A stretch of 64,000 nucleotides of DNA from Heteronotia binoei. Lineage: Eukaryota. Of this stretch, positions 9,356 through 64,000 are shown in pieces. The DNA lies in assembly GCF_032191835.1 (NCBI RefSeq), contig NC_083239.1, positions 24,800,001 through 24,864,000 on the forward strand, in the 5' to 3' direction. Every line of letters begins with the position of its first letter. Position 1 is the first letter of the stretch. Below the pieces are notes generated by a model. That model did not search any database and was not told where the DNA came from. It was given only the letters and a program-made list of their open reading frames with translations. Made by a program: the position numbers and the translations under genes.

Positions 9356-10423
9356 TCAGATGCAGAGGTCTGGAGCGGCGCGCTTGCTGCTGGCGGCCGG
9401 TGGAGTGTGGGGCGGCCTGCTCTGCTCTTCCTTGGCTCCCTGAAGCGCCGCCTCGTTGTTGTTGGAGCTGCTGCTGTTCTGAGGAGGCGGCGATGCAGGC
9501 CCCCGGTGCTCTTGGCGGTCCTCTGAATGGCAGAGCGCCGCCAGCTCCGTTTGGTTTCCCAGGAGCCAGCTGAATCCGCTCGGGGCGGAAGGCAGGGGCC
9601 TCTGCGGCGCCCCGGCACGTAGTTGCAGCTCCGCGCCATTTCTGGCAGCGGCGGTGTGAGCCTCGTCCGCCTCGTCTTTCTTTTTGTCCTGGCCGCAGAT
9701 TCCCTTTCGAGTCTTCTTGAAGACGAGGTGCAGGAGCTCCAGGATGTTCAAACACAAGGAAACGGTTGCTATGGCTTGCATAAAAACAAGGAAGACGGTC
9801 TTTTCCGTCGGTCTGGAGACAAAGCACTCCACAGTGTTTGGGCAAGGAGCTGTTTGACATTTATACAGAGGGTCTAGCTGAAATCCATACAAAAGGTATT
9901 GGCCAATCATAAATCCAGTTTCAAGAATAGATCTAATAACGATATGGATCACGTAAGTACAGAGCAGTGAGCCCCGGAGGGGTGCCTTGTTGAGCTTCCT
10001 TTGCTCCAGTTGCCGGAGTTCCCTCTCTATTTTTTTACGATCCTCAATCATTTCAAATTCAGCTCCCTCCAGTTCAGCCCTCAGCTTTGCTTTTTTCTTT
10101 TGCCGTTCTTTTTCTAATGTCCTTAGTCTGTATAAGGCATGGCCCATGTACACCAAGGAAGGTGAGGATACAAAGATGACTTGCAAAACCCAGTATCTTA
10201 TTAGAGAAATGGGGAAGGCATGATCATAACACACATTTCTGCATCCAGGTTGCTGTGTGTTGCAAATGAATTCAGTCTGCTCATCATTCCAGACATCTTC
10301 GGCTGCCACACCAAGAACGAGCATCCGGAATATGAAGAGGATGGTTAGCCAGACCTTGCCAATGGTGGTGGAGTGAATATGGACTTCTTCTAAAATTCCT
10401 CCCAGGAAACTCCAGTCTCCCAT
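9356..10423 (-). CDS. GJA9: Gap junction alpha-9 (Cx59 orthologue), single coding exon, 355 aa
   Basis: [19 protein letters not shown]...[14 protein letters not shown]...[16 protein letters not shown] connexin signatures; cytoplasmic loop [22 protein letters not shown] typical of GJA9/GJA10; position between MYCBP and RHBDL2. Confidence 0.93.
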
Positions 10424-16327: not shown

Positions 16328-17002
<675 letters not shown>

Positions 17003-21026: not shown

Positions 21027-21237
21027 ATGGAGGGACGGTGGCTTAGTGGTAGAGCATCTGCTTGGGCAGCAGAAGGTCCCAGGTTCAATCCCTGGCATCT
21101 CCAAAAAAGGGTCCAGGCAAATAGGTGTGAAAAACCTCAGCTTGAGACCCTGGAGAGCCGCTGCCAGTCTGAGAAGACAATACTGACTTTGATGGACCAA
21201 AGGTCTGATTCAGTATAAGGCAGCTTCATATGTTCAT
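21027..21237 (+). mobile_element. Squam3-like tRNA-derived SINE
   Basis: A box GGTGGCTTAGTGG, B box GGTTCAATCCC, tail GACAATACTGACTTTGATGGACC..CAGTATAAGGCAGCTTCATATGTTC; copies at 42446-42775, 42813-42975, 43170-43640 (-), 50723-50925 (+). Confidence 0.8.
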
Positions 21238-36926: not shown

Positions 36927-38600
36927 CCAAACGTTAAGAGTTGTACAGATTTGCTTCCCTTCCACAAATTCTGCCAAAATGTTTTTCAGATCTTTGCCTC
37001 TACCACTCCCCCCTCCCCAGAATATTGCTGAAACTCAGCATTTTAAAAAAACAGCCCTTTGAGGTACTGCTGCTCATCTCTTAGATCTTTTGAATGTGCC
37101 TACCAGAAGAGGAACACTAGGGAAAGTAGGAAGGCTGACTAATTTCTCTGCCCTGGTCCAGCTGTTGCACATAAATGGTACAGAAACAGCACCAGGCTGT
37201 GAGTTCACGCCTCCTTTCCTTCCTTAATGTAGCTTGGGGCCAAATTAGAGGTGAGATCAGTCTTAAAAATGTGTAGTCCCAACAGGAAAGGCAAACAACC
37301 AAGAAGCAAGGCTGCTCTGTCCAGTTCTGATCCACACCCAATATAAGGAAGTCGGCCAAAGGTTTAAAAACACACCAGCCGCTTACTGAAAACACCAGGC
37401 GGATGGTAGCAGCAGATGGCTGGAGATGAGGTTTTAATATTGATAAAAATACAACCGCCTCTGTCTTGTTTAAAAGGGAACAAATGGGTCAAGGAGATCC
37501 CAGTGTATGCTGACATCAGAAAATGAAAAAAGTGAGAGTGCCCAAGTGCACGTGTCAATTCCACGGTCCAGTAATCCATGCAGTAGTTAGATGACAGCAC
37601 AACAGAAGGCATCACGTTTGAGTATCCTGGCTGAAGTTCTGAAAAGGCCATCCAGAAAACATATCCAAAGGGGGCAGCCTCTTGGCCCTCCCAATCCCTT
37701 TAAGGACTCTGAAGCAGGGACAGCTCCCACCTCCCACCCTGCCCCCTAAGAAGCCACCCCAGAGGAACTGTGCATAGGCAAAGCTTTCAAAAGAATGGAA
37801 GAACTGTTCTTTAGAAGCAATTTTCCCCCACACAAGCTGATGAATCCCAACTCTGGCCAACCAGATGAAGGAACATAAGGCCGGTTCACACCCCAGTTGC
37901 ACCTTCTCAAAGCAATGTTTGAGAAGCAACAAAGCCTTATTTCACACACACCCCTTTTTTCCTCACGCCTTTCTTCTCCAAATGCAGTATATTCTCCTGT
38001 CTCCCTTAGACACCAACATCCTGTTTTGTCCTGGGTGACCTGCCACACTTTCTTCTCTTTTTAATTTGGGTGTGGCTCAGGATGATGGCAATTTCCACCT
38101 ACTCTGCCATCTTCACCAAACAAGAAACAGAGGAAGGTGCAAGAAAGCAGAGCATGGCAAGCCACCCAGGACAAACCTGGGTGTCAGGGTCAAAGAACGA
38201 CATGAGAACTCCCTGAGTTTTGAGAAGCGGAAAGATCTGAAGGAAAAAAATAAGTCTAGCAGATGAAGGCTGGAAGACACATATTTGATAGCAAGAGATT
38301 GAAATTTCAGCTGACCTTCTAAGGCTGATGGCAGACGCAGGGAAAAGAACCCCCAAGGAGGTGAAGGGGGCTAGGAAAAACAAGACTCGTTCCAGCCACC
38401 AAGGAAACCTGATTTTTTAGATTTAAACAAATTCCAGCCTCTGAGAGAACACTTTATATAATTATCCTCTCCAGGGGAAAATATCAGAAGGTATGACAGG
38501 ATGCCATCAAAAGCTAGTCTTCTGAGCCCGAAAGACTTGGGAAGATGGAACTGTCCCCCCCACCCCGAGTTCTTGCTGGGGGGTTGCCCGTGCCAGTTTG

Positions 38601-38773
38601 TCAACTCTGCTGGTCCTTGACTAGCAACACTGTGTGTTGACCACCACCCTTCACTGAGAGGACAGTGCGGTTCTCCAGCTGTTGGCCCGACATCTGGACA
38701 GGGCTCCAGGCGTCCTCTTCGTCTCCTGATGCCAGCTGGAGATTTGAACCCATACCCCAAGCAAAAGCTTGCC
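38601..38773 (-). CDS. RCC1: RCC1 last coding exon
   Basis: [56 protein letters not shown]; acceptor TTTCTTTGCAG. Confidence 0.95.
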
Positions 38774-39960
38774 CTGCAAAGAAAGAGGTGGGTGTGGATC
38801 AGTGTTAACAAAAAAAGCTCCATGATACGTCCCAATGGCTGGCTGCAAAATTTTAAGTGTTTTTAGTGCTCTGTCCATGGTACATGTGCTGTTGTGGTCT
38901 CCCTATTTGTTCAGGAGGGCCTTTTTGTAAAAGAAACAGAGTATAGGCTAACGGATCTGTGAAAGCTTAGATGATTTTATTCATTGCCCTCCCTAGATGT
39001 GCCCTGAGTGGGGCTACATCTGCTCTTCTAAAGCCCCATCAGCACTGGGCACAAACCCCAGCATGGAACAACACACTGGACTGGGGGTACAGCCAGAACT
39101 GGGTAAGGTTATATGAGCTGGCACAGCCCTTACCCATTTCCCTGGCAGAATTTCCAGTTCATGACAAAAGGCTACCATGAGCTTTAGGCCACCACAGTGC
39201 TTGATTTCAGCCATTTACATAATTGTGAGGTTGACAAATGTAAGAACTTTTACTCCCTCTCCCTCAAGACTAGAGCTCAAGGGTATCCAATTAAGTTGGT
39301 GGGCTATAGTTGGTAAATGATAGGAGACAAAACCCTGACAGAAAATTCCACCCCTTAGAGTTTGTCATGGATATGCCTACCCACACATCCTGTCTCTGAC
39401 AGCAAAGATGACACAGCAGACTCTTAATAAGCAAATTCATTTCCCAGAAAGCTTCAGGAGAGCTCCTTATGGAGGATAAGTCAATATACGGCAATTTAGC
39501 CATGACAACTGACTGGAACTTCCATTTTCAGGGACAGTAGCACGCTTAAGAATGGTACGGGGGAGACAATGGGAGGATTTGGCCTCTGTGATCTGCTTCT
39601 GGGCCTTTTGAGGATATTTGGTGAGCCACTGGGTAAGACAGGACACTGGACTGATCCTGCACAGCTGCTCTAACATTCACACTATGCATATCTGGAGATT
39701 TAAAAGCTGCTTTTTACAGAACTTATATCTCACTTACTTCCAGAACAGACATTCAATGTATGTTACAAGGCTCTGCTAGAATACAGGACATCTCAGTGTC
39801 CTGAATATCAGACTTAACCATTTCTGGCATTTCTACCTTCCAAATATTTATCTGGCCTTTTCTCAAATAAACATGGGGACAAGAAACTTAGGTCTTTTTA
39901 AAAAAAAAATGCAGCTATATTCCTGGTGGCAATCTGATTATCTTGAAGCAGTTCACAGAA

Positions 39961-40505
39961 CCTAGAATCATAGAGTTGGAAGGGACCTCCAGGGCCATCT
40001 TGTCCAGTCCCCTGCACAATGCAGGAAACCCACAAATACCTACCCCAAATTCACAGGATCTTCATTGCTGTCAGATGGCCATCTAGCCTCTGTTTAAAAA
40101 CCTCCAAAGGAGAGCCCACCACCTCCCGAGGAAGCCTGTTCCACTGAGGAATCGCTCTAACAGTCAGGAAGTGCTTCCTAATGTTGGGCCGGAAACTCTT
40201 CTGATTTCATTTCAACCCACTGGTTCTGGTCCTATGTCCGGGGCCACAGAAAACAATTCCATACCATTCTCTATATGACAGCCCTTCAAGTACTTGAAGA
40301 TGGTGATCATATCACCTCTCAGCTGCCTCCTCTCCAGGCTAAACATCCCCAGCTCCTTCAACCTTTCCTCATAGGACTTGGTCTCCAGACCCCTCACCAT
40401 CTTCGTCGCCCTCCTCTGGACCTGTTCCAGCTTGTCTATATCCTTCTTAAAATGTGGTGCCCATAACTGAACACAATACTCCAGCTGAGGTCTTACCAGA
40501 GCAAA
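39961..40505 (-). mobile_element. CR1 LINE 3' fragment
   Basis: [40 protein letters not shown]-terminus and ATTCTATGATTCT 3' end; another CR1 at 45790-46245 (+). Confidence 0.9.
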
Positions 40506-40556
40506 GTAAACCTGCAGAAAAGGTGCCCTGAGGCCCAGGCCTCTTTTTGGACTCAC

Positions 40557-40709
40557 CATCTTCAGTAACTGCAAAGCCAACCCGTTCTCCGCAGGCGACG
40601 GAGGATGCCTTTGCCAGTCCAGAGATGGCAGTGGGAGTGCTCTTATCTTCAACACCTTCTCCCAGGCCCAACATGCCGTAGTTTGCTCTGCCAAGGCTAT
40701 GCACTGTGC
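40557..40709 (-). CDS. RCC1: RCC1 coding exon 8
   Basis: [50 protein letters not shown], 153 nt. Confidence 0.95.
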
Positions 40710-41695
40710 CTGTTCGAAATGAAGAGGCAGAATAAGAAAGAGGGACAGGAATATGTTTTGCTCAGAAGAGAAGGAAATGGGAACACGAAGTATGAATTCG
40801 AAAACATGTTTGAATGAAAGACATCTTACATTTAGAAAGCAAGCATGCTATCTCCACACCGCCCCCCAAATCAAGCAAGTGTCCTAAATGCATGACCTGA
40901 TAAGGTCAGGAAAGATCCCACACATGATCATTCCACAGAATATGTCAAATCAGTGGTGGTCAAACTGTGGCTTGGGAGCCATATGTGGCTCTTTCACACA
41001 TATTGTGTGGCTCTCAAAGCCCCCACTGCCCCTAGCTTGGAGAATGCATTTCAAGTTAAAGTTGCTTTCTTTTCACCTCTCCCTCCCTGCTTCCTCTTTC
41101 TATCTATTTGCTTTCTTTCCACCTTTCAATCCTTCCTTCCTTCCTTGTCTTGCGGCTCTCAGACATCTGACATTCATGTCTTGAGGCTCTCAAACATCTG
41201 ACATTAATTCTATGTAGCTCTTACATTAAGCAAGTTTGGCCATCCCTGTGTCAAATGATTCCAGAGGGCTTTTGAAAAAATGGTAAGTGTTATATTTTTT
41301 AATGCCTGCGACAAATTTTAGACAGCCCCCTCCATAACTCTCCATATCTTGGATGGGCGGGGGGCGGGGGCAGGGGAGAGGAAGAGAGAGAGAGAAGAAT
41401 CATAGAAGAACATAAAATTGCAAATCAACTAAACAAGTCTGGGTAAACAGAAAGTTCAGACAAACAGGTAGTCTCTTGATACCAGATGCTTAGAATAATC
41501 ATGTCACTTAGTAAAGTCATATGACTCTTCTTAGCTTCACATGATTCTGGAAGCTTAGTGGAATCGTCATCAAGCAGATGTCTGAGGGCATATCTCCATA
41601 TCTGGGTTGCCAAATAAAAGGCTAGCAAACAGTCAATCCTCTGCTATCAGAGACACCACCAGTTATTTCTCCCTACTCCACTCTGGGCTGCTCAC

Positions 41696-41815
41696 CTTCT
41701 GAATCCAGGCACACGGTATGGTGTTGCCCAGCAGAGAATTCCACCCAGGATCTGGTGGAGTTCTTGAACGCTGTCAGAATCTTTGGAGAATAGTAAGTGT
41801 CAATACTTTGCGAAC
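41696..41815 (-). CDS. RCC1: RCC1 coding exon 7
   Basis: SQSIDTYYSPKILTAFKNSTRSWVEFSAGQHHTVCLDSE, 120 nt. Confidence 0.95.
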
Positions 41816-42245
41816 CTGGAGGAGTAAGCCAAGGAAACCCCAGTTAGAGCCAGTGACAAATCAGAGTGGTCAGGTTGATCTACCCACAGTTCAGAGCAGT
41901 TCAACTCTAGTGAAGCCACAACTGACACCCCTCCACCCTATGCATACAGGAGCAACCCATCTAGGAGGCCACCACCTAGCCTAGTACACAAACCATGAAA
42001 GTTATGGCAAACAAGATCAGACAGACACAGCTGTCTTTCCACCCTCTTGAGCATGATTCAGCTTGCAGGAATTGCATCCTCGTTCTTCTCCAATAGAGAC
42101 AAGGAAGAAATAATACTTCCTCATTCTTCCCCACCCCTCCGGATGACTCAGAAGTTGTAAGAACCTCGGCAACATGTTCTTCTTGCAACACCTGATGGCC
42201 TACACTCCCCCCCCCCCCATCCTTGGCACACAGACAGTGACTTAC

Positions 42246-42401
42246 CCAGCTGGTAGTAATTGGAGAGGCCAAACCCAATGACATGGCCCTCCTGGGTGAG
42301 GGCTATGGTGGAATAGGAGCCACAGAAGACATCACAGATGTGCCCTTTGTTCTTACTGCCTCTCTGCTTGAGGGGGACGGGTTGGGGGAGCAGCAGCCGT
42401 T
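42246..42401 (-). CDS. RCC1: RCC1 coding exon 6
   Basis: [51 protein letters not shown], 156 nt. Confidence 0.95.
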
Positions 42402-43738
42402 CTGGAGGTGAGAGAGAGGGCTTAGGGGAATCAGCACAGAACACATGATACTGCTTATACTGAATCAGAACACTGGCCATCAAAGTTAGTATTGTCTACT
42501 CAGACTGACAACAGGGTCTCCAGGTCTTTCATATCATCTGCTACTTGTTCCTTTTAACTGGAGATGCCTGGGATTGAACCTGGGACCTTCTGCATGCCAA
42601 GAATTTTATTGATTTTAGTGTATATTTTGTTTTTAAATATTTTATGTTGCTTTTATTTGTTGGTAGCCACCCTGAGCCCATCAGGGGAGGGTGGGATATA
42701 AATCTGATTAAATAAATAAATAAGATAAACCAAGATGCTCTACCAGTGAGCCACAGCCCCTCCGCTGACATAACTGAGTGCCTGAAGCTACCTCATCCTC
42801 AGACAGATCCTTGGTCTCTCAAGACCAATACTGTCTATTCAGACTGGCAGCTGCTCTCCAGGGTTTCAAAGAGAGGTCTTTCCTATCACCTACTTCCCTG
42901 ATCCTTTTTCAATTGGAGATGCCAGGGACTGAACCTGGGACCTTCTGCAGGCAAAGCACGAGCTCTGCCACCAAGTTCTCTTATACTAATTTAGGTCCTG
43001 CCCTGACCTGGATGGCCCAGGCTAGTCTAATCTCAGCAGATCTTGAAAACTAAGCAGGGTCAACCCTGGTTAGGACTTGGATGGAAGACCACCAAGGAAA
43101 ACCAGGGTCACAATGACACAGGTGTAGCCAATGGCAAACCACCTTTGAATGTCTTCTGCCTTGAAAACCACCCAAGTTAAGTCTTTGGCCTATCCAGCTC
43201 AGCAAGCTCTGTGCTAACTGGCAGCAGCCCTCTGGGATCTCAGGAAGAGAAACTGAGACCTTCTGCATGCAAAACATATGCTCTGCCTTGGCCCCTCCCT
43301 CGATGAAGCTGCCTTATACACAGGGCTTTTTTTTTTTAGCAGGAACTCCTTTGCATATTAGGTCACCCACACCTGATGTAGCCAATCCTCCTGGAGCTTA
43401 CAATAGACCCTGTAAGAAGAGCCCTGTAAGCTCTTGGAGGATTGGCTATATCAAGGGCGTGTGGCCTAATATGCAAAGGAGTTCCTGGTCTATTTTCGCC
43501 AACATTGTCTATTCTGACTGGCAACAGCTCTCCAGAGCATCATGGAGAAGTCTCTCATTACTGAATCTCAGACCCTTTTCAGGGGAGATTGAACCTAGGA
43601 CTTTCTGCACGCAAAGGAGCTGCTCTGCTACTAAGCCATGGGCCCCTCCTCCTTGAAAGTCCCTGTATTTACATTAGCCAATTCACCACCCCAAGCTGTT
43701 CACATACAGTTTCCCCCAAAACAACAAAATCAACTCAC

Positions 43739-43861
43739 CCAATCCTCGTCTTCCTCCTCGGGCACTGAAGATTTGGGGCACTCGACCCAACTGGCCATTG
43801 TCTCCACAACCACAGGTATAAAGGTTCCCCTCTGTGGACACTAATGCCAAGTGATGGCTCC
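43739..43861 (-). CDS. RCC1: RCC1 coding exon 5
   Basis: SHHLALVSTEGNLYTCGCGDNGQLGRVPQIFSARGGRRGL, 123 nt. Confidence 0.95.
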
Positions 43862-44574
43862 CTGGGAAAGTGAAGGCAAAGTAAGTGAAGATCTAGAGAA
43901 GTCCTATCTGCAACTCAGAGAGCAGGCTGCAATACTGAAACCATACACCTACAATACTGCAATCCATGACATTCAGAGGCAAAGTGAATTGCAAGTAATT
44001 TTTGTGTAAATAATTTAGGGTTTGCAAGCATGGTGCTGGTTGGTTGGGACAGGAGGAAGGAGAAACTGAAGAGCTAAATATGAAAATTCTACCTCCATAG
44101 TGATGGCAATCATGGGAACGCAGGGCTCTCATGGAAGATGAGGGAAAGTCTTATTCAACAGGGGGAGGGGGGAAGGCTACTGTGAAAAATAATTCAAAGC
44201 AAGTACATTTTCAGGGCTCCTTCTGTCTTCTGGAAGTGTTCAGTGAAAATAAGTTATGCTTATGAGCATAACCAGTTTGTGACAAGCTGGCAAACCACAA
44301 GAGTAAGTTTCGAACCATTCTGAGTTCTTTCTGCTAAGATTTCGGGGGGTCTTGATAGAAGGAGGAGAGATTTTTCCCATCTCTCCATTCATGATTCTTG
44401 GTAATGCAGTACAATTGCAATGTTCAACAAATTGAATATATAAATAAAAGCAAACACAAATACACAATCCAAATATGAAGCCAAATCTGCCAGAACAAGG
44501 ACATTACACCAAGAGGAAAACCACAGCAACGGAAGCTGGTCGCAGAACAGAAGCTCCACATCACAGTTGCTCAC

Positions 44575-44698
44575 CTGAAGCAATTTTTACGATTGGCACT
44601 TCCAGCTGTAGCTCCACAGGGACAGAACTGCCGCTCGAGGATTCAAGCCCCTCTCCACCCTTTGTGGGAGCCAGTAAGCCGATGACACCGTTCTCATC
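44575..44698 (-). CDS. RCC1: RCC1 coding exon 4
   Basis: [41 protein letters not shown], 124 nt, frame preserved. Confidence 0.93.
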
Positions 44699-44786
44699 CT
44701 GAATAGACATGCCAGCAGAGAAAGGCTGTTAGCAAGCATGAAGAAAAAAGCCCAAGAAAAAGCACCACCGAGAAAAACAAACATAC

Positions 44787-44966
44787 CCGGAAAGCTCCCC
44801 AGATGAACACACGTCCATCCTCCGTCAACGCTGCAGTGTGGCTGTCACCAGCAGAAACCTGAACCACTTTCTCCTTCAGCTCCACAAGCCCCGGCACAGA
44901 GTCAGACCCTTCCTCTGAAGTGTCGCGCCCCAAGGCTCCTTCGTCGTTGCATCCAAAAGTGTAGAT
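44787..44966 (-). CDS. RCC1: RCC1 coding exon 3
   Basis: [20 protein letters not shown]...[24 protein letters not shown], 180 nt. Confidence 0.97.
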
Positions 44967-45503
44967 CTGGGAACAGAAAAGCCACCTGATGGCCAAGAAA
45001 TCCAGACGGAACCCCAGCACTGAGACAGGCCATCCTCTGTCTACCTTATGTATCCTTCCCTGTCTCTATGGAATTCAGAGAAGGACACTAGATTCTCTCT
45101 TCACAACAGCCCTGTGAGGTGAGTCAGGCAGAGAGAATGCTACTGGCCCAAGGCCCTCCAGAGTGTTGCTTGGGGATATGAACGCAGGCTGGCTGGGGTG
45201 CTAGCCCTATCCAGCAAGAAAGCACCTATGAAAGCTTTTAGAGGGGCAGATCCATAAACTGCTCATACAGCAAAAGGGACAGCTGAAAGCCTGCAACTGG
45301 AGCAGGTGCAGCTGTGCTTGCTTTTGGCAGGAAAACAGCCATACATCAGGGAGCTAGCTACCTGCAATGACTGCCAGCCCAGGCTCATGTGATCTTCAGG
45401 CACCCAGAAGACTCAGACAGTGTGAACTGGTTCTATATCAGGAAGCAGCACAGACAAAGGCACGGCTAGGCTACTACATAAACTCTGCCCTACCAACGAC
45501 TAT

Positions 45504-45701
45504 CAGGGGTTTTTTGGTAGCAGGAACTCCTTTGCATATTAGGCCACACCTCCCTGATGTAGCCAATCCTCCAAGAGCTTACAAGGTTCTTAGTACAGGG
45601 TCTACTGTAAGCTCCAGGAGGATGGCTACATCAGGGGGGTGCGGCCTAATATGCAAAGGATTGGCTACATTAGGGGAGTGCGGCAACAACAAAAAGCCCT
45701 G
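45504..45701. mobile_element. Foldback hAT MITE
   Basis: Palindromic; TSD ACGACTAT / ACAGCTAT. Confidence 0.75.
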
Positions 45702-46816
45702 ACAGCTATTAACCATCAGAGACAGCAGGGTGCAGCAGTTAAGAGCAAGGGATTAGCAGACCACACTCCACCACAGAAGCTTGCCAGGTGACCATGGGCC
45801 ACTCGTGGAGCAGGTGCAGAGGACAGCGACAAGGATGATCAGCGGCCTGGAGACCAAGCCCTCTGAGGAAAGGCTGAGAAACTTGGGAATGTTCAGTCTG
45901 GAGAAGAGGAGGTTGAGGGGGGACATGATTGCTCTCTATAAGTATCTGAAGGGCTCACTTAGAGAAGGGGAGGGAGCTGTTCCTGTTGGCAACAGAGGAG
46001 ATGACTTGTAATAATGGGTTTAAAATAAGGGTGGGAAGGTACTGGCTGGCTATTAGGAAATACTTGTTTACAGTAAGAGTTGTTCAACAGTGGAATCAGT
46101 TGCCTAGGTAGGTGGTGTTCCCCCTCAATGGCAGTCTTTAAGCAGCAACTGAACAAAGACTTATTAGGGATGATCTAGGCTGATCCTGCATTGAGAAGGA
46201 ATTAGACTAGATGGCCTGTAGGGCCCTTTCTAATTCTGTGATTCTATTATTCATTCTCTCTTTCAGCCTAACCTGCCTCACAGGGTCGATGTTGTGCAGA
46301 TACAACACAGGCAGAAAGAAGAGCTTCACTCCACACTGTGGGTAAAACATCTAATTTCATTTTTTTTTTCATTCTCTTTTTCCTTGTTGTGAACTCTGGC
46401 TTACTTCTCCTTCTTCCTCTGCTTTCCTGACCAATTAAGACTGGAAGCCCACAAACCCAGCTACTTTAAACAGAATGTTATGATTTATAACCTAATGGTA
46501 AGTAACAAATGGCTGAATCTTTCCACTACTGTGGCCAACCTTTCCAAACTTGGGACTCACTTTTAACCCCAGGCATGGGGACCATCCAGTTGCAAGCCAC
46601 ACAGCCACATGACAGGAAGGAGGAGGAGCCAAAGGTACTGAATCCTAAAAAGTAATCCTGGCCACCACTGACTGACCTCAGCTTTGTAGAGCCCATGACA
46701 GGCTACCAGCTTGAACCCAGACGGCACAGCTGTATCTTAGGCCACCCTCATCTGCTGCACCACACAAAGCACCCTCAGAGGGCACCTCTCCAGTATCCAT
46801 GAAACAGAGTGTTAAC

Positions 46817-46997
46817 CAGGGCTTTTTTTGTAGCAGGAATTCCTTTGCATATTAGGCCACTCCCCCCTAATGTAGCCAGTCCTCCTGGAGCTTACAGTAG
46901 GCTCTATACTAAGAGCCCTGTAAGCTCTTGGAGGATTGGCTACATCAGGGGGTGTGGCCTAATATGCAAAGGAGTTCCTGTTACAAAAAAAGCCCTG
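46817..46997. mobile_element. Foldback hAT MITE
   Basis: Near-perfect 181-bp palindrome; TSD GTGTTAAC / ATGTTAAC. Confidence 0.88.
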
Positions 46998-48066
46998 ATG
47001 TTAACCATATTGCAGACATGAGGCAGCCCAACACAGGGGCCCTGAATACTGTGACAGACAAAAAAGCACATCTGCCTGGGTCTAGGGGCAATCTATACCA
47101 AACACCTCTGTCCCCCCCACCCCCACAGTATAATCTTCTCAGATCTTCTGAACTCATCAAGTATGTAAAATAGCTTACTCAGAAGATCTAGCTCCAAAGT
47201 CTTGCCTTTGTTTCTAAAAGGGTGGGCGTCCTTACTGCTCTTACTCAAGGACTTCCTGCTTTACATAATCTTGTCAGTGTTACAAAGACATCTTACTATC
47301 TAAACCACAGCTCTGCATGCCGCCCTTTTGTATGTCATCTTTCCCAATTCTTATTCTAGGAACCAAGACAATATTATTGAATATTTATCACTAATGGGAC
47401 CACCACCCTGCAAAAAGCCCTTTATCATTCCAACCTATTTTTCTACATATTGCTTGTACTTACATTTACTATGTGTGTTAGCTTAACTACTACATTTCTC
47501 TTAATAAAGCCCTTATATTAAAATTGTCACCTGGTTTCTGTTAGAAGTTTTTTTCCCTTTGAAACTGACCCTGTTATACATAGGTAGAGATTCCCGCCTG
47601 TTATTCCTGTTTGCTATATTGGGTCTCATGATAATTCCCCTATCTAAATTTGAGACGAGGCAGTTTAGGTAACACCTTGCCCACCTGCAATTCCTGTTTG
47701 CATGCAAAGAAAGGCAAAAGGTATGCTGCCCCTGCTCTCTACACCTGTACACTAGCAGCACATCCTTCAAAAAAGCAGGCAGCTCCAAAAAAGCTCATGG
47801 CTCCAGGGTCAGTCTCTTTGACCTGCTCGATAGTCCCCAGCCATGAGCTGAAGAACACAGATCTACATTTTGATCCCAAAGGAGCTCAGAGTGGTGTACA
47901 TGATTCTCCCCCCATCAGTGCTCACAACCACCCTGCAAGGTAGGCAAGGCAGAGCAAGTCTGAGATTGCCTAATGAGCTTCATGGGTAGGGTGGCTTTGA
48001 ATCCTCATCCCTAGACAGACACACTACTCATGCTATACTGGACATGGAGGGGTGTTGCAGACTCAC

Positions 48067-48254
48067 TTTGCCTGTCTCACTGAGGCACACTGTGTGAACC
48101 CCTCCTGCTTCGGCTTGGATGATCTTCTCAGGGAGCTTCACCAAGGCAGGTCTCTTCCTCGCCAGGATGTCAGGCCCGAGGCCCAGCTGCCCGAGATCAC
48201 CCTGCCCCAAGGTCAATACCAGACCCGCTTCCGTTTGATGCGACCGATGGCTGA
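48067..48254 (-). CDS. RCC1: RCC1 coding exon 2
   Basis: (V)[38 protein letters not shown]...[16 protein letters not shown], 188 nt. Confidence 0.96.
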
Positions 48255-50450
48255 CTGAACAAGGGTGGAAGGAAAAATCGCCAACAGAAGTTAGAGAGAC
48301 ACAAGAACAACCTTCACACATGTTAATACAGGTGTGATCTGCCCCATAAAGGAGCACAAGAACTCAAAGCTTCACTGAAAAACAAGTTAAACATGATTCA
48401 GATGAACACACAAACAATGTACTAGAATATAAAGCAAAACCAGGACAAAGATGCAGCTAAAACAATGAAACAAGAGCCCAATTTTTCTGAACTGCCTTCC
48501 AGTCAGCTGTTCATCAGCTGCTTCTCAAAGACATGGGCCGATTCTGCATTAGCCTTTGTCCTGGTCTTGTTCTCAGTTCTCAAGTTTGTGTGGGGCAGGG
48601 AGGAAGCAGGGAACACATGGCCTTGCTCCAGAGATGCCAATGCAGGATCCTGAAAAAAGAGCCACGCTGAGCAGCCCCGCACAGTAGGGAGGGAAGTGCT
48701 AAATGTGGAGACTGGATCCTTGTTCCCCATCAAGGTCCAAGAGGGCTGACCAACAACAGACCAAACTGGGGGGTTTGCACAACTGCATTCCCAACAGACT
48801 CCCCCAAATGCCTTCTGAAAGACTGGAAGGAGAAACAGTTTAGCCTTCTGGACACTGGTGGTGGAAAGTCACGGCTGACTTATGGGAACCGCAAAGACTT
48901 TTCAAGGCAAGAGATGAAGAGAGGTGGTTGGCCATTGCCTGCCTCTGCATTGTGACCCTGGACTTCCTCAGGGGTCTCCATCCAAATACAAGCCAGAGCC
49001 AGCCCTGCTTAGCTTCCGAGATCTGATGAGATCAGGCTAACCTGGACCCTCCAGATCAGGGCCTCTGGACATGAAGCACATGTTTTTAGGCAGTAAAGGT
49101 GAAAAAGGTAGTCCCTGTGCAAGCACCAGTCGTTTCCGACTCTGGAGTGACGTTGCTTTCACAACGTTTTCACGGCAGACTTTTTATGGGGTGGTTTGCC
49201 ATTGCCTTCCCCAGTCATCTACACTTCCCCTCCCAGCAAACTGGGTACTCATTTTGCCAACCTCGGAAGGATGGAAGGCTGAGTCAACCTTGAGTCGGCT
49301 ACCTGAACCCAGCTTCCGCCAGGATCAAACTCAGGTCGTGCGCAGAGCTTGGATTGCAGTACTGCAGCTGACCACTCTGTGCCACAGGGCTCCTTTTTAG
49401 GCAGTACCCCTAGGCAATACTGAATCAATGCAACCAATTCCTTCAGCCAATCCTAGAGTTATACCCTTCCAAGTCAACAGTCTTAGAACAGTGTAACAGT
49501 CAAGGGAATATCAGAAAGTATAGCATTCAACTTTTTAAAAAACTTACTACAGAAATCATATATGTAGTAGTAGTAATAAAATGTAACGCATAAATCCATT
49601 AGCCATTACAATTACAGCAGCTTACAAGTTAAAAGCAAAGACTCTAAAATGAAAACGTTCAAATTTAGATTATTTACAGTCTTAATTACATACAGCGTCC
49701 CCATATATGAAGAAATAAATATGGAGAATTATCTGTAGAACAGGGATATAACATTGTTATTCTTTGTACTCATATTCTGTACTACCCGGTTTGTGTTCAT
49801 AATAAAAAGGCTGTTAAAAATAGAAAGGAAGAATATAATTCTGCTTCGGATGGCACTACTTGGCACCAACGTTTTAGACAAATGGATGAGATGGTTCCCA
49901 GTAAGCGTAGACTGTGTCTTGTCAGTGTGACATTGTTAGCTGAAAGAAAATGAGGTGAATTCTCATGTTACTAATATTCTCTCAGCTAGAATGTTACTGA
50001 CTTGAGAGTTCTTTTGTTGTTGTTGTGTGTGTGGTTGTGTGTGTGCCCGTGCACATTTGGAAGTCATGGCGACCTCCAGTGATTCACCCCTACTGGAAGC
50101 CTGGAGGATATTCCAGGGATGTGGCTGAATACAGTCTGCCTCCACCTCCCGACTGCTGGCCAACCACCTCTGCCTTGAAAGCATTCGTCAGTTCTGGCCT
50201 GACAGCACTTACATACATATCACTCAGGATTAACTAGGGGCCAGCCATTATTATAGGGTCAAGGAAGGAAGCAGGTAGGCCTGAATCTTACTCCATTCAT
50301 GCCCCTGTTTTCTTACGTTTTCATTTTGGGAAACCACTTTGTGTTCAAAAGCATTTCTACAACTGCAGGAAAACAAACAACTGCTGAAGTCTTCCTGCAT
50401 GCTGGAAGTAAGTTGTGAATGGCAATGCAAAGGAACAGATGACCTCTTAC

Positions 50451-50508
50451 CTTTTGTCCGTTTTGCTTTGAGTACGTCGTCTTTTTCCAGCACACGTTTC
50501 CTGGGCAT
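50451..50508 (-). CDS. RCC1: RCC1 first coding exon (NLS tail MPRKRVLEKDDVLKAKRTK)
   Basis: Acceptor CTCTCAG at 50521, ATG at 50508, phase-1 donor G|GTAAGA matching exon 2 phase; basic bipartite NLS. Confidence 0.85.
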
Positions 50509-54319: not shown

Positions 54320-57300
54320 GGATCTACACGGATCTTCATGAATTCATATGATTTTTACATTGAAATGAAATCAAACCACTTTAATCCTGTAGATTCTGTT
54401 TTAGACTATAGGCAGGACCACAAAAATCATGCCTCCACGAATTCGTGGCGCCTCAGCAGTGCAAAAACTGGCTTCCAAAGCACGGATCCTCATGAATTCA
54501 TATGATTTTTATGGTGAAATGAAATCAAACCACCATCATGTTGTAGATCCTCTCTTAGACTATAGGCAGCACCAGAAAAATCATGCCTCCACGAATTGGT
54601 GGCGCCACAGCACTGAAAAAACATGTTTCCAAACCACGGATCCTCATGGATCCTCATGATTTTTGCTTTGGGCCACCACAAGATAACCAGCCAATCACAT
54701 ATCATGTCCATGGGCAGATGTTGGACCACAGAAATCGTGGATCCACGGCTTCGTGGCAGCACCAGGGACCAAAAACTTACTTTTGGACCACGGATCCTCA
54801 TGGATCCATGTGATTTTTGCTTCGGATCCCCCCAAGCCATCCATCCAGTCACATATCATGTCCATGGGCACAGTTTACACCACAGAAATCATGGATCCAC
54901 GGCTTCGTGGCAGCGCCAGGGACCAAAAACTTGCTTTTGGACCACGGATCCTCATGGATCCACGTGATTTTTGCCTTGGATCCCCCCAAGACGTCCATCC
55001 AGTCATATATCATGTCCATGGGCACAGTTTACATCACAGAAATCATGGATCCACGGCTTCGTGGCAGCGCCAGGGACCAAAAACTTGCTTTTGGACCACG
55101 GATCCTCATGGATCCACATGATTTTTGCCTTGGATCCCCCCAAGCCATCCATCCAGTCATATATTATGTCCATGGGCACAGTTTACACCACAGAAATCAT
55201 GGATCCACGGCTTCGTGGCAGCGCCAGGGACCAAAAACTTGCTTTTGGACCACGGATCCTCATGGATACACATGATTTTTGCCTTGGATCCCCCCAAGCC
55301 ATCCATCCAGTCATATATTATGTTCATGGGCACAGTTTACACCACAGAAATCATGGATCCACGGCTTCGTGGCAGCGCCAGGGACCAAAAACTTGCTTTT
55401 GGACCACGGATCCTCATGGATCCACATGATTTTTGCCTTGGATCCCCCCAAGCCGTCCATCCAGTCATATATAATGTCCATGGGCACAGTTTACACCACA
55501 GAAATAATGGATCCACGGCTTCGTGGCAGCGCCAGGGACCAAAAACTTGCTTTTGGACCACGGATCCTCATGGATCCACATGATTTTTGCCTTGGATCCC
55601 CCCAAACCGTCCATCCAGTCATGTATCATGTCCATGGGCACAGCTTACACCACAGAAATCATGGATCCACGGCTTCGTGGCAGCGCCAGGGACCAAAAAC
55701 TTGCTTTTGGACCACGGATCCTCATGGATCCACATGATTTTTGCCTTGGATCCCCCCAAGCCATCCATCCAGTCATATATCATGTCCATGGGCACAGTTT
55801 ACACCACAGAAATCATGGATCCACGGCTTCGTGGCAGCGCCAAAGACCAAAAACTTGCTTTTGGACAACGGATCCTCATGGATCCACATGATTTTTGCCT
55901 TGGATCCCCCCAAGCCATCCATCCAGTCATATATCATGTCCATGGGCACAGCTTACACCACAGAAATCATGGATCCACGGCTTCGTGGCAGCGCCAGGGA
56001 CCAAAAACTTGCTTTTGGACCACGGATCCTCATGGATCCACATGATTTTTACCTTGGATCCCCCCAAGCCATCCATCCAGTCATATATCATGTCCATGGG
56101 CACAGTTTACACCACAGAAATCATGGATCCACGGCTTCGTGGCAGCGCCAGGGACCAAAAACTTGCTTTTGGACCACAGATCCTCATGGATCCACATGAT
56201 TTTTGCCTTGGATCCCCCCAAGCCATCCATCCAGTCATATATTATGTCCATGGGCACAGCTTACACCACAGAAATCATGGATCCACGGCTTCGTGGCAGC
56301 GCCAGGGACCAAAAGCTTGCTTTGGACCACGGATCCTCATGGATCCACATGATTTTTGCCTTGGATCCCCCCAAGCCATCCATCCAGTCATATATCATGT
56401 CCATGGGCACAGTTTACACCACAGAAATCATGGATCCACGGCTTCGTGGCAGCGCCAGGGACCAAAAACTTGCTTTTGGACCACGGATCCTCATGGATAC
56501 ACATGATTTTTGCCTTGGATCCCCCCAAGCCATCCATCCAGTCATATATCATGTCCATGGGCACAGTTTACACCACAGAAATCATGGATCCACGGCTTTG
56601 TGGCAGCGCCAGGGACCAAAAACTTGCTTTTGGACCACAGATCCTCATGGATCCATGTGATTTCTGCTTCGGATCCCCCCAAGCCCTCCACACAGCCACA
56701 TATCATGTCCATGGGCAGAGTTTACACCACAGAAATCATGGCTCCATGGTTTCATGGCAGCGTCAGGGACCAAAAACTTGGTTTTGAATCACGGATCCTC
56801 ATGGATCCACATGATTTCTGCTTCAGATCCTCCCAAGCCCTCAATCGAATCACGTATCACGTCTATTAGCAGAGTCTAGAACACAGAAATCATAGATCCA
56901 CGGCTTCGTGGCAGTTCCAGAAATAAAAAACTTGGTTATAAACCATGGATCCTCATGGATCCACGTGATTTCTGCTTCGGAACCCCGCAAGCCCTCCATA
57001 CAGCCACATATCATGTCCATGGGGACAGTTTACACCACAGAAATTGTGGATCCACGGCTTTGTGGCAGCACCAGGGACCAAAAGCTTGCTTTTGGACCAC
57101 GGATCCTCATGGATCCATGTGATTTTTGCTTCGGATCCCCCCAAGCTCTCCACACAGCCACATATCATGTCCATGGGCACAGTTTAAACCACAGAAATCA
57201 TGGATCCACGGTTTCGTGGCAGCTTCAGGGACCAAAAACCTGCTTTTGGACCACGGATCCTCATGGATCCATGTGATTTCTGCTTCGGATCCCCCCAAGC

Positions 57301-58590
57301 CCTCCATACAGCCACATATCATGTCCATGGGCACAGTTTACACCACAGAAATCATGGCTCCATGGTTTCATGGCAGCGCCAGGGACCAAAAACTTGGTTT
57401 TGAATCACGGATCCTCACGGATCCACATGATTTCTGCTTCAGATCCTCCCAAGCCCTCAATGGAATCACGTACCATGTCCATGAGCAGAGTCTACAACAC
57501 AGAAATCATGGATCCACGGCTTCGTGGCAGCTCCAGAAATCAAAAACTTGGTTATAAACCACGGATCCTCATGAATCCACGTGATTTCTGCTTCGTAACC
57601 CCCCAAGCCCTCCATACAGTCACATATCATGTCCATGGCCAGAGTTTCCACCACAGAAATCATGGATCCACGGCTTCGTGGCAGCACCAGGGACCAAAAA
57701 CGTGCTTTTGGACCACGGATCCTCATGGATCCATGTGATTTCTGCTTCGGATCCCCCCAAGCCCTCCATACAGCCACATATCATGTCCATGGGCACAGTT
57801 TACACTACAGAAATCATGGATCCACGGTTTCGTGGCAGCACCAGGGACCAAAAACTTGCTTTTGGACCACGGATCCTCATGGATCCACATGATTTTTGCT
57901 TTGGAGCCCCCCAAGCCCTCCATCCAGTCGCATATCATGCCCATGGACAGAGTTTGCAGCACAGATATTGTGGATTCACAACTTCATGGCAGCGCCAGGG
58001 ACCAAAAACTTGCTTTTGGAACACAGATCCTCATGAATCCTCATGATTTTTACTTTGGGCCACCCCAAGCTCTCTATCCAATCACATATCATGTCCATGG
58101 GTAAAGCTTGCACCACAGAAATCATAGATACACAGCTTCGTGGCAGTGCCAGAGACCAAAAACTTGGTATTGGACCATGGATCCTCATGAATCCTCATGA
58201 TTTTTGCCTTGGATTCCCCCAACCTCACCATCCAATCGCATATCATGTCTATGGGCGGAGCTTCCACCACAAAAATCATGGATCCACGGCTTCGTGGCAG
58301 CACCATGGAAGAAGAACTTGGTTTTGCACCATGGATCCTCATGAGTTTACACCCTGGAAATCATGGATCCTTGGCATTGTGGCAACATCATGGAGCGAAA
58401 ACATGGCTTTGAAGCACATATCCTCATGGATCCTCATGATATCTGCATTGGCTCATCCCAAGCTCACCATCCAATCTCATGTTGTGTCCATGGAAAGAGC
58501 TTGCTCCACAGATATAATGGATCCATGGCTTCGTGGCAGCACCATGGATCCAGAACATGATTTTGAGGCACGGATCCTCATGGGTCCTCT
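54320..58590 (+). repeat. 154-bp satellite array, arm 1 (about 28 monomers)
   Basis: Consensus ACCACGGATCCTCATGGATCCACATGATTTTTGCCTTGGATCCCCCCAAGCCATCCATCCAGTCATATATCATGTCCATGGGCACAGTTTACACCACAGAAATCATGGATCCACGGCTTCGTGGCAGCGCCAGGGACCAAAAACTTGCTTTTGG; period 154 also seen in ORF starts 54817/54971/55125/55279. Confidence 0.97.
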
Positions 58591-60339: not shown

Positions 60340-63300
60340 AATGTCGAGTTTTCCTTGATCCAACGCAAATAACTTTAAGATCAAGAAGGATCCGCATTTC
60401 AAAACCATATTTTGGCTCCTTGTTACCGGCACAAAGCCATGGACCTGTCATTCCTGTGGTGCAAGGTCTGCCAAAAATCATGGTGGAATCCAACGCAAAA
60501 ATCATGTGGATCCATGAAGATCCATGGTCCAAAAGCAAGTTTTGGTCCCTGGCGCTGCCACGAAGCTGTGGATCGACCAATTCTGTGGTGAAAACTCTGC
60601 CCATGGACATGATATATGACTGTATGGAGGGCTTGGGGGAATCCAAGGCAAAAATCAAGTGGATCCATGAGGATCGGTGGTTCATAACCAAGTTTTTGAT
60701 TTCTGGCGCTGCCACGAAACTGTGGATCCATGATTTCTGTGGTGGAAACTCTGCCCATGGACATGATATGTGATTGCATGGAGGGCTTGGGGGTTCCGAA
60801 GCAGAAATCACATGGATCCATGAGGATCCGTGGTCCAAAAGCAAGTATTTGGTCCCTGGCGCTGCCACGAAGCCACGGATCCACGATTTCTGTGGTGCAA
60901 ACTATGCCCATGGACATGACATGTGGCTGTATGGAGGGCTTGGGGGGGTCCAAAGCAAAAATCACGTGGATCCATGAGGATCCATGGTCCAAAAGCAAGT
61001 TTTTGGTCGCTGGCGCTGCCACGAAGACATGGATCCACGATTTCTGTGTTGCACACTCTGCTCATGGACATGATATGTGACTGGATGGAGGGTTTGGGGG
61101 GATCCAAAGCAGAAATCATGTGGATCCATGAGGATCCGTGGTCCAAAAGCAAGTTTTTGGTCCCTGGCGCTGCCACGAAACCGTGGATCCATGATTTCTG
61201 TGGTGTAAACTGTGCCCATGGACATTATATGTGACTGGATGGAGGGCTTGGAGGGATCCGAAGCGAAAATCACGTGGATCCATGAGGATCCGTGGTCCAA
61301 AAGCAAGTTTTTGGTCCGTGGCGCTGCCACGAAGCCGTGGATCCACGATTTCTGTGGTGCAAACACTGCCCATGGACAAGATAAGTGACTGGATGGAGGG
61401 TTTGAGGGATCCAAAGCAGAAATCTTGGATCCATGGTCCAAAATCATGTTTTTGGTCCCTGGTGCTGCCACGAAGATGTGGATCCACGATTTCTGTGGTG
61501 CAGACTCTGCTCAAGGACATGATATGTGACTGGATGGAGGGTTCGAGGGATCCAAAGCAGAAATCATGTGGATCCATGAGGATCCGTGGTCCAAAATCAA
61601 GTTTTTGGTCTCTGGCGCTGCCACGAAGACGTGGATCCATGATTTCTGTAGTGCAGACTCTGCTCATGGACATGATATGTGATGGGTTTGAGGGCTTGGG
61701 GAATCCAAAGCAGAAATCATGTGGATCCATGAGGATCCGTGGTCCAAAAGCAAGTTTTTGGTCCCTAGCGCTGCCACGAAGCCGTGGATCCATGATTTCT
61801 GTGGTGCAAACTCTGCCCATGGACATGATATGTGACTGAATGGAGGGTTGGAGGCATCCAAGGCAGAAATCATGCGGGTCAATGAGGATCCGAGGTCCAA
61901 AATCAAGTTTTTGGTCCCTGGCACTGCCACGAAGCTGTGGATCCACATTTTCTGTGGTGTAAACACTGCCTATGGACATGATAACTGCCTGGATGGAGGG
62001 TTTGGGGGGATCCGAAGCAGAAATCACATGGAACCATGAGGATCCGTGGTCCAAAAGCAAGTTTTTGGTCCCTGGCGCCGCCACGAAGCCATGGATCCAC
62101 GATTTCTGTGGTGCAAACACTGCCCATGGACATGATAAGTGACTGGATGGAGGGTTTGAGGGATCCGAAGCAGAAATCATGTGGATCCATGAGGATCCGT
62201 GGTCCAAAATCATGTTTTTGGTCCCTGATGCTGACACGAAGACGTGGAGCCATGATTTTTGTGGTGCAGACTCTGCTCATGGACATGATATGTGACTGGA
62301 TGGAGGGCTTGGGGGGATCCGAAGCAGAAATCATGTGGATCCATGAGGATCCGTGGTCCAAAATCATGTTTTTGGTCCCTGGCGCTGCCACGAAGAAAAG
62401 GATCTACGATTTCTGTGGCGCAGACTCTGCTCATGGACATGATATGTGACTGGATGGAGGGTTCGAGGGATCCGAAGCAGAAATCATGTGGGTCCAAGAG
62501 GATCCGTGCTCCGAAATCATGTTTTTGGTCCCTGGCGCTACACGAAGACGTGGATCCATGATTTCTGTGGTGCAGACTCTGCTCATGGACATGATATGTG
62601 ATGGGTTTGAGGGCTTGGGGGATCCAGAGCAGAAATCATGTGGATCCATGAGGATCCGTGGTCCAAAAGCAAGTTTTTGGTCCCTGGCGCTGCCACGAAG
62701 CCGTGGATCCATGATTTCTGTGGTGTAAACTGTGCCCATGGACATGATATATGACTGGATGGATGGCTTGGGGGGATCCAAGGCAAAAATCATGTGGATC
62801 CATGAGGATCCGTGGTCCAAAAGCAAGTTTTTGGTCCCTGGCGCTGCCACGAAGCCGTGGATCCATGATTTCTGTGGTGTAAACTGTGCCCATGGACATG
62901 ATATATGACTGGATGGATGGCTTGGGGGGATCCAAGGCAAAAATCATGTGGATCCATGAGGATCCGTGGTCCAAAGCAAGTTTTTGGTCCCTGGCGCTGC
63001 CACGAAGCCGTGGATCCATGATTTCTGTGGTGTAAACTGTGCCCATGGACATGACATATGACTGGATGGATGGCTTGGGGGGATCCAAGGCAAAAATCAT
63101 GTGGATCCATGAAGATCCGTGGTCCAAAAGCAAGTTTTTGGTCCCTGGCGCTGCCACGAAGCCGTGGATCCATGATTTCTGTGGTGTAAACTGTGCCCAT
63201 GGACATGATATATGACTGGATGGATGGCTTGGGGGGATCCAAGGAAAAAATCATGTGGATCCATGAGGATCCGTGGTCCAAAGCAAGCTTTTGGTCCCTG

Positions 63301-64000
63301 GCGCTGCCACGAAGCCGTGGATCCATGATTTCTGTGGTGTAAGCTGTGCCCATGGACATGATATATGACTGGATGGATGGCTTGGGGGGATCCAAGGCAA
63401 AAATCATGTGTATCCATGAGGATCCGTGGTCCAAAAGCAAGTTTTTGGTCCCTGGCGCTGCCACGAAGCCGTGGATCCATGATTTCTGTGGTGTAAACTG
63501 TGCCCATGGACATGATATATGACTGGATGGATGGCTTGGGGGGATCCAAGGCAAAAATCATGTGGATCCATGAGGATCCGTGGTCCAAAGCAAGCTTTCG
63601 GTCCCTGGCGCTGCCACGAAGCCGTGGATCCATGATTTCTGTGGTGTAAGCTGTGCCCATGGACATAATATATGACTGGATGGATGGCTTGGGGGGATCC
63701 AAGGCAAAAATCATGTGGATCCATGAGGATCCGTGGTCCAAAACCAAGTTTTTGGTCCCTGGTGCTGCCACGAAGCCGTGGATCCATGATTTCTGTGGTG
63801 TAAACTGTGCCCATGGACATGATATATGACTGGATGGATGGCTTGGGGGGGATCCAAGGCAAAAATCACGTGGATCCATGAGGATCCGTGGTCCAAAAGC
63901 AAGTTTTTGGTCCCTGGCGCTGCCACGAAGCCGTGGATCCATGATTCCTGTGGTGTAAGCTGTGCCCATGGACATGATATATGACTGGATGGATGGCTTG
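60340..64000 (-). repeat. 154-bp satellite array, arm 2 (inverted; runs off the window)
   Basis: Reverse complement of the arm-1 monomer; diverged near 60.3-62.6 kb, homogeneous from about 62.6 kb. Confidence 0.97.

Follow-up and report, generated by a model that had tools for sequence, protein, structure and literature searches.

Gene model, transcription and splicing

The stretch of DNA analysed here (the window; 64,000 nt of Heteronotia binoei, positions 24,800,001–24,864,000 of NC_083239.1 in assembly GCF_032191835.1, with all coordinates below given as positions within it) harbors a gene for RCC1, the guanine nucleotide exchange factor (GEF) of the GTPase Ran. It comprises nine coding exons on the minus strand, running from 50508 to 38601, with a coding sequence of 1275 nt that specifies 424 amino acids and a stop codon. 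We consider it probable that this gene, the sole copy, encodes a functional RanGEF orthologue in which a single substitution, D182H in human numbering, is truly out of the ordinary and probably compensated. Exon boundaries were set by reading phase and splice signals in the minus-strand translation of 38.5–50.6 kb; all eight introns are of the GT..AG type and the window contains no runs of N. Phase, splice signals and coding length confirm the nine-exon, GT–AG model with a 424-residue open reading frame (ORF) proposed in an earlier note on this DNA.

Human numbering was assigned through per-exon phmmer alignments to the solved human RCC1 chains, among which 5tbk_I carries full-length numbering. 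Exon 1 (50451–50508, with the ATG at 50508) encodes a basic N-terminal tail resembling a nuclear localization signal (MPRKR...KAKRTK) and ends in phase 1 at the donor GTAAGA. Exon 2 (48067–48254; human residues 25–87) encodes blade 1 and exon 3 (44787–44966; residues 88–147) blade 2, followed by exon 4 (44575–44698) with the beta-wedge, exon 5 (43739–43861; residues 180–220), exon 6 (42246–42401; residues 221–273), exon 7 (41696–41815; residues 273–313), exon 8 (40557–40709; residues 313–364) and exon 9 (38601–38773; residues 364–421), which closes with the stop codon at 38601–38603. Human RCC1 was the top match among solved structures for exons 2 (E = 9e-38), 5 (1e-20), 6 (1.5e-19) and 8 (9e-20). 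A search of the PDB with exon 4 returned no match, because this query is short and carries an insertion. The translated gene is predicted to form one propeller of about 400 residues from seven tandem RCC1 repeats: the exon translations align best to human RCC1 and secondarily to its other blades (6–7 stretches per chain), and in a MAFFT alignment the exon pieces stack on one repeat.

The gene is transcribed and spliced as modelled. A 2784-nt RNA contig from the metatranscriptome of an independent study (run X4, from an organism that is near-identical) links exons 8 through 3 in the modelled order, with pieces matching 40559–40708 (exon 8), 44574–44697 (exon 4) and 44786–44966 (exon 3). It differs from the window at no position in exon 8, at one in exon 6, at one in exon 4, where the match is gapless, and at four in exon 3, and the intervals between its pieces equal the lengths of exon 7 (120 nt) and exon 5 (123 nt; contig positions 2099–2221) exactly. 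The insertion in exon 4 is therefore part of the mRNA, and exon 5 is present without insertions or deletions. Contig positions 1–1671 lie 3' of exon 8 and point to a 3' untranslated region of about 1.5 kb (37100–38600, minus strand, the lower end being approximate).

Raw RNA reads from a run labelled with the same species cover exons 6–8 at 1–2x and exon 5 at about 0x, and two related DNA runs (X5 and X10) cover exon 5. These depths bear on the possibility that the histidine codon at position 182 is an assembly or consensus error, a G to C change at 43856. Independent reads across the codon were not observed, which leaves some room for such an error; however, exon 5 differs from human RCC1 at 17 of 40 residues rather than at a single base, and the RNA contig, from another study, spans exon 5 at its exact length with only 0–4 differences in each exon piece listed above. 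We regard an error as very improbable.

Read depth in all four runs is dominated by short and long interspersed elements (SINEs and LINEs) in the RCC1 introns. Copies of a very abundant repeat, with huge depth in all four runs, lie at 42450–43650, 45400–45700 and 46800–47000, in introns 3–5 and upstream. A 3' fragment of a CR1-like LINE (40215–40520, minus strand) directly follows the exon 8 donor, and a 211-residue open frame there crosses exon 8 in another frame.

Copy number and orthology

Copies were counted by six-frame searches of the 2.63-Gb assembly (661 contigs, with the window at C17:24.80–24.864 Mb) using exons 3, 5, 8 and 9 as protein. Each of the four exons matched once at 100% across the whole assembly, and the next matches (E > 0.03, at most 52% identity over part of an exon) belong to other RCC1-repeat genes. 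Because a canonical RCC1 exon is about 60–85% identical, a second RCC1 would have been easily found. This is thus the only RCC1 gene of the genome, and the duplicate or decoy that the earlier note had envisaged has no counterpart in the assembly.

In a maximum-likelihood tree, H. binoei RCC1 is sister to L018 (support 100/99), a complete vertebrate RCC1 gene on metagenome contig Ga0065711_1050146 (281–4723, plus strand) with nine exons, 421 amino acids, short introns and a GC content of 61%. From its composition and shared residues, L018 is probably avian host DNA. Grouping with vertebrate RCC1, the same nine exons and phases as in L018, and presence in single copy all mark the H. binoei gene as an orthologue; synteny with human RCC1 was not found, as the neighbouring genes appear to differ from those in human.

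Residues kept and replaced relative to human RCC1

Alignment to solved human RCC1 bore out every substitution listed in the earlier note, at its codon and human position, together with all the residues that it had described as retained (D44, D95, D128, R206, R214, R217, H304, R320 and H410). Exon 2 keeps D44 and carries E56A (48160–48162) and M77V (48097–48099), and exon 3 keeps D95, D128 and R147 (44787–44789). The F-R-D motif of the beta-wedge is present with R147 and, in exon 4, D148, and is followed by N149E (44693–44695). Exon 5 carries the tripeptide S-H-H (AGC CAT CAC, 43859–43851), in which N181S and D182H (CAT, 43854–43856) precede a conserved H183; L187V and E200D/Q201N (43797–43802) follow, while R206 and the R-G-G-R motif of the switchback loop (43749–43760), with R214 and R217, are kept. 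Exon 6 carries H270Y (42253–42255) as well as A249S and F251S, which turn CGAYF into CGSYS. H304 is kept in exon 7 (41721–41723), R320 in exon 8 and H410 in exon 9; exon 8 also contains Y316H, E322N (40681–40683), R325M (40672–40674) and A354E/S355R (40582–40587), and a further change converts GGMH to GGVH.

Three changes come in addition to those in the earlier note: N149E within the wedge, G298E/G301A in exon 7, and a nine-residue insertion directly after the beta-wedge (GGEGLESSS, 44633–44659, minus strand) that is missing from human RCC1 and L018. Alanine mutants define five residues of the catalytic face; four of them (D44, D128, H304 and H410) are kept, and the fifth, D182, is replaced by His. 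Makde and colleagues reportedly found in 2010 that the switchback arginines R214 and R217 of human RCC1 dock on the histone acidic patch.

The start codon is predicted from the sequence, exon 1 lying beyond the coverage of the RNA contig; L018 begins alike (MPGKR). Alpha-N-methylation needs an X-P-K/R motif, which in human RCC1 is S2-P3-K4 (PMC6465133). The predicted H. binoei start, M-P-R-K (50497–50508, minus strand), would not have Pro as its second residue once Met is removed, and so does not provide this motif. L018, starting M-P-G-K (281–292), also lacks it, so that the trait is not peculiar to H. binoei. If both start codons are right, methylation of the RCC1 tail may not be conserved in these two lineages.

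Conservation across eukaryotic RCC1 sequences

The substitutions were set against a MAFFT alignment of 25 sequences: H. binoei RCC1, L018 and 23 other RCC1 homologues. A metagenome scan with exon 3, the source of L018 among others, yielded 80 RCC1 loci, many of them intron-less transcript contigs of assorted eukaryotes with full ORFs. An exhaustive representative search with exon 3 gave giant multi-repeat proteins as its best 150 matches, with no RCC1 orthologue among them; a metagenome scan with the exon 5 frame gave no match and a word-index search with the same frame no candidate; and a word-index search with a two-row alignment (a 280-residue frame of alsin plus exon 2) retrieved alsin fragments in all 120 matches listed.

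Position 182 is Asp in 22 of the 25 sequences and Asn in two (L062 and L051), with His found in H. binoei alone. Arg147 is Arg in 24 of the 25. Eight of the altered positions are plainly variable columns (N149, A249, F251, H270, G298, G301, A354 and S355), with Tyr at 270 in four other sequences and S-Y-S in one. At E56, M77, Q201, E322 and R325 the columns are mostly conserved and the H. binoei residue is unique, and at E200 one other sequence also has Asp. The earlier note had described substitutions clustered on a remodelled Ran-binding face; the sites are real, but about half of them are variable columns in this alignment.

A stricter comparison used 83 ultra-conserved columns, defined by the same residue in at least 20 of 22 outgroups. 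H. binoei RCC1 keeps 77 of these and L018 80. The six deviations in H. binoei are M77V, V88I, D182H, L187V, E200D and N267S, and I88 and S267 also occur in L018. This leaves four lineage-specific deviations, of which three fall in exon 5; D182H is the only one that is not conservative. The end branches of the tree (0.42 for H. binoei RCC1 and 0.29 for L018, a 1.45x difference) suggest a modest acceleration of the H. binoei lineage, not a runaway one. On the alignment, most of the residues that differ from human RCC1 reflect ordinary divergence in a lineage that evolves somewhat fast, at sites variable among eukaryotic RCC1s. The unusual set at otherwise conserved sites, as judged from the same sequences, consists of D182H above all, with L187V, E200D, Q201N, M77V, E56A, E322N and R325M.

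Age and selection of the substitutions in exons 6 and 7

A word-index search with the exon 6 frame returned one match, P0151, an ORF on genomic Logan contigs of two runs (L009 and L010); contig L009 also holds RCC1 exon 7. Over exons 6 and 7, H. binoei and L009 differ with a synonymous divergence (dS) of 0.83 and a nonsynonymous divergence (dN) of 0.087, a dN/dS of 0.10, which points to a distant relative and to strong purifying selection. L009 already has SNYYQLG, with H270Y, and CGSYS. Of 37 differences from human RCC1 in these exons, counted by hand with human residues 284–300 (part of exon 7) taken from outside the alignments, 26 show the same residue in L009, eight are changed differently in both, and three are confined to H. 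binoei: I255L, G298E and G301A. The last two are shared by neither L009, L018 nor human. At least in exons 6–7, the substitutions are, on this comparison, old and common to a distant relative. The earlier note had named the presence of the same substitutions in the single-copy RCC1 of most squamates as evidence against its reading; H270Y and CGSYS do recur in this relative, within the two exons that the cross-species data cover. A literature search found no paper on RCC1 selection in lizards.

These results also bear on the idea of a neofunctionalised or decoy paralogue, a nucleosome-binding duplicate that no longer activates Ran. The retention of chromatin-binding residues while D182 changed is the only pattern that speaks for it. 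The genome, however, holds no second copy of four exons, the nine-exon layout and intron positions are those of L018, the tree sister is this canonical vertebrate RCC1, and dN/dS is 0.10 over exons 6–7. With 77 of the 83 ultra-conserved columns kept and an end branch 1.45x that of L018, we find no support for the neofunctionalisation advanced in the earlier note, and we consider such a paralogue extremely improbable.

The Ran partner

Ran was located with a 49-residue Ran sequence that served solely as a probe, in place of a Pfam Ras scan that returned too many GTPases. The probe identified a single locus, at C11:70.77 Mb; all other matches were at most 51% identical, and the next-best-scoring one, at 43%, falls among the other GTPases. 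An apparent identity of 85–87% at the Ran locus proved to be an artefact of intron flanks. Of the four Ran exons located in this way, two were compared with PDB Ran chains: the exon for residues 83–145 is identical to human Ran, and the exon for residues 41–82 differs only by V51L and P58A, both outside switch II, which is itself identical. The exon that carries the P-loop reads LVLVGDGGTGKTT..., presumably the same as in human Ran.

With one locus that is near-identical to human Ran over the compared exons, there is no divergent Ran partner. The earlier note had offered, as one of its readings, co-evolution of a sole orthologue with a divergent Ran, and had suggested a check for Ran paralogues in the same genome. 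The sole orthologue stands, but neither a divergent Ran nor a paralogue was found with the 49-residue probe, and nothing else was found in favour of co-evolution; adaptation of this RCC1 to an altered Ran, or to a second one, is hardly credible.

Role of residue 182 and a candidate mechanism

In human RCC1, D182A strongly lowers kcat, with nucleotide-free Ran still bound (PMC2898669). Asp182 makes no contact with Ran; through an intramolecular hydrogen bond it steadies Arg147 of the beta-wedge on the Ran P-loop (PMC2898669). The statement in the earlier note that the altered loops contact Ran is thus only partly backed, Asp182 being the exception, and a literature search found no paper tabulating RCC1–Ran contacts.

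RCC1 is essential. Because it is also single-copy in H. binoei and Ran is unchanged, the protein most likely still catalyses exchange. Arg147 is kept, and His182, which can donate or accept a hydrogen bond, may replace the bond between Asp182 and Arg147. Possibly, the unique acidic residue of N149E, two positions after Arg147, aids His182 in this role. Chromatin docking would be retained through the switchback loop with R214 and R217 and the basic tail. Since two other homologues (L062 and L051) have Asn182, the charge or carboxylate of Asp182 is not indispensable in nature.

Several points weigh against a normally active enzyme. D182A, the standard mutant for deficient exchange, fails to re-establish the Ran gradient in tsBN2 cells (PMC2174574). 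The H. binoei residue is His, not Asp, and normal exchange activity is thus an assumption; compensation between Glu149 and His182 is an idea drawn from sequence, and the His182 codon itself lacks independent read support, with raw RNA depth near zero on its exon. In addition, the concentration of three of the four lineage-specific ultra-conserved deviations in exon 5, together with a His182 unique among 25 sequences, suggests more than drift at a single position.

These points lend some weight to a sole RCC1 with truly weakened exchange, in which D182H together with E56A, Q201N, E322N and R325M lowers kcat or the affinity for Ran, and the deficit is tolerated or offset, for example by expression level or by regulation through Nup50 or RanBP1. 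The strongly lowered kcat of D182A (PMC2898669; PMC2174574) fits such a loss, as do the uniqueness of His182 and several neighbouring states among 25 RCC1s at mostly conserved columns and the lack of a matching change in Ran. Yet the gene is essential and single-copy, the rest of the Ran face is intact (including R147, D128, H304, H410 and D44), purifying selection is strong where it is measurable (exons 6–7), and Asn182 occurs naturally elsewhere; we therefore judge weakened exchange unlikely. A working RanGEF with a compensated D182H remains our preferred reading. A more specific proposal, which we put forward tentatively and hold to be rather unlikely, is that the sole RCC1 works with His182 either because the role of holding Arg147 has moved to His182 and Glu149 along with L187V, E200D and Q201N, or because the lineage makes do with clearly slower exchange.

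Apart from D182H, the locus is that of an ordinary orthologue, and a decoy paralogue bound to chromatin need no longer be considered. The only RCC1 of a living vertebrate with His182, facing a near-human Ran, would imply either that the aspartate is replaceable or that the Ran system can cope with much slower exchange. If true, under either reading of His182, this lineage would constitute a natural experiment on the catalytic mechanism of RCC1 with Ran unchanged.

Neighbouring genes and other features

Downstream of RCC1, the window contains, all on the minus strand, a first exon of RagC/D type, accompanied by a CpG island (349–861), an intact single-exon connexin (9356–10423; Pfam Connexin, E = 6e-96) and an exon at about 30.8–31.3 kb that has no Pfam match and that we take to be RHBDL2-like. 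In human, the counterparts of these three neighbours presumably cluster at 1p34.3, about 10 Mb away from RCC1; if this placement is correct, the gene order around RCC1 differs from that in human.

An intron-less, intact ORF of 184 residues at 16385–16939 (plus strand) encodes ribosomal protein L17/uL22 (Pfam Ribosomal_L22, E = 1e-36) and is probably a processed retrocopy whose frame has stayed open. At 21031–21103 (plus strand) lies a tRNA-like gene for tRNA-Pro with anticodon GGG (Rfam tRNA, 49 bits). Nuclear tRNA-Pro of animals rarely has this anticodon, so the gene may instead be a pseudogene or the head of a SINE. A 154-bp satellite forms two arrays of opposite orientation, at 54327–58343 (plus strand) and 60481–64000 (inverted), with about 24 and 23 copies that match at about 90%. 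The arrays are located 4–13 kb from the RCC1 start, on its upstream side, and extend past the window end; they contain long spurious ORFs because the units are open in several reading frames.

Elsewhere in the genome, a 341-residue open exon with RCC1-like repeats (G000:C16:48537520-48538545; L011 1521-2546) is the large exon of alsin (ALS2). Its closest named relative in the protein collection is from turkey (76%), and Logan fragments match it at 86–88%, in keeping with the origin of the window from a reptile other than a bird.

Comparison with known systems

Human RCC1 (PDB 1A12, 1I2M with Ran, 5TBK and 8UX1) and H. binoei RCC1 are nearly identical in length (421 and 424 residues) and share about two-thirds of their residues by a hand count over the per-exon alignments. 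Both have seven repeats, the R147/D148 wedge, the residues D44, D95, D128, H304, R320 and H410, the arginines R214 and R217, and a basic tail. Unlike the human protein, that of H. binoei carries D182H, N181S, N149E and other changes, the nine-residue insertion, and a tail that reads P-R-K where the human one reads S-P-K. Engineered human RCC1-D182A resembles it in that the carboxylate of Asp182 is likewise gone. In contrast to the engineered alanine, the histidine of H. binoei can hydrogen-bond, and it occurs naturally, in the only RCC1 gene of its genome and with other changes nearby.

The RCC1 of L018 shares the nine coding exons and their phases, 68% identity, and the motifs IYTFG, PGLVEL, TQEGH and ENRTVL with that of H. 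binoei, but is canonical at E56, M77, N149, N181, D182, E200, Q201, A249, F251, H270, E322, R325, A354 and S355 and has no insertion. Relative to Drosophila RCC1/BJ1, solved bound to the nucleosome (PDB 3MVD), H. binoei keeps H183 and the arginine-rich loop. The D182-H183 pair and the E-Q of GC.EQGQLGR, however, are conserved from fly to human, whereas H. binoei has H-H and D-N at these positions.

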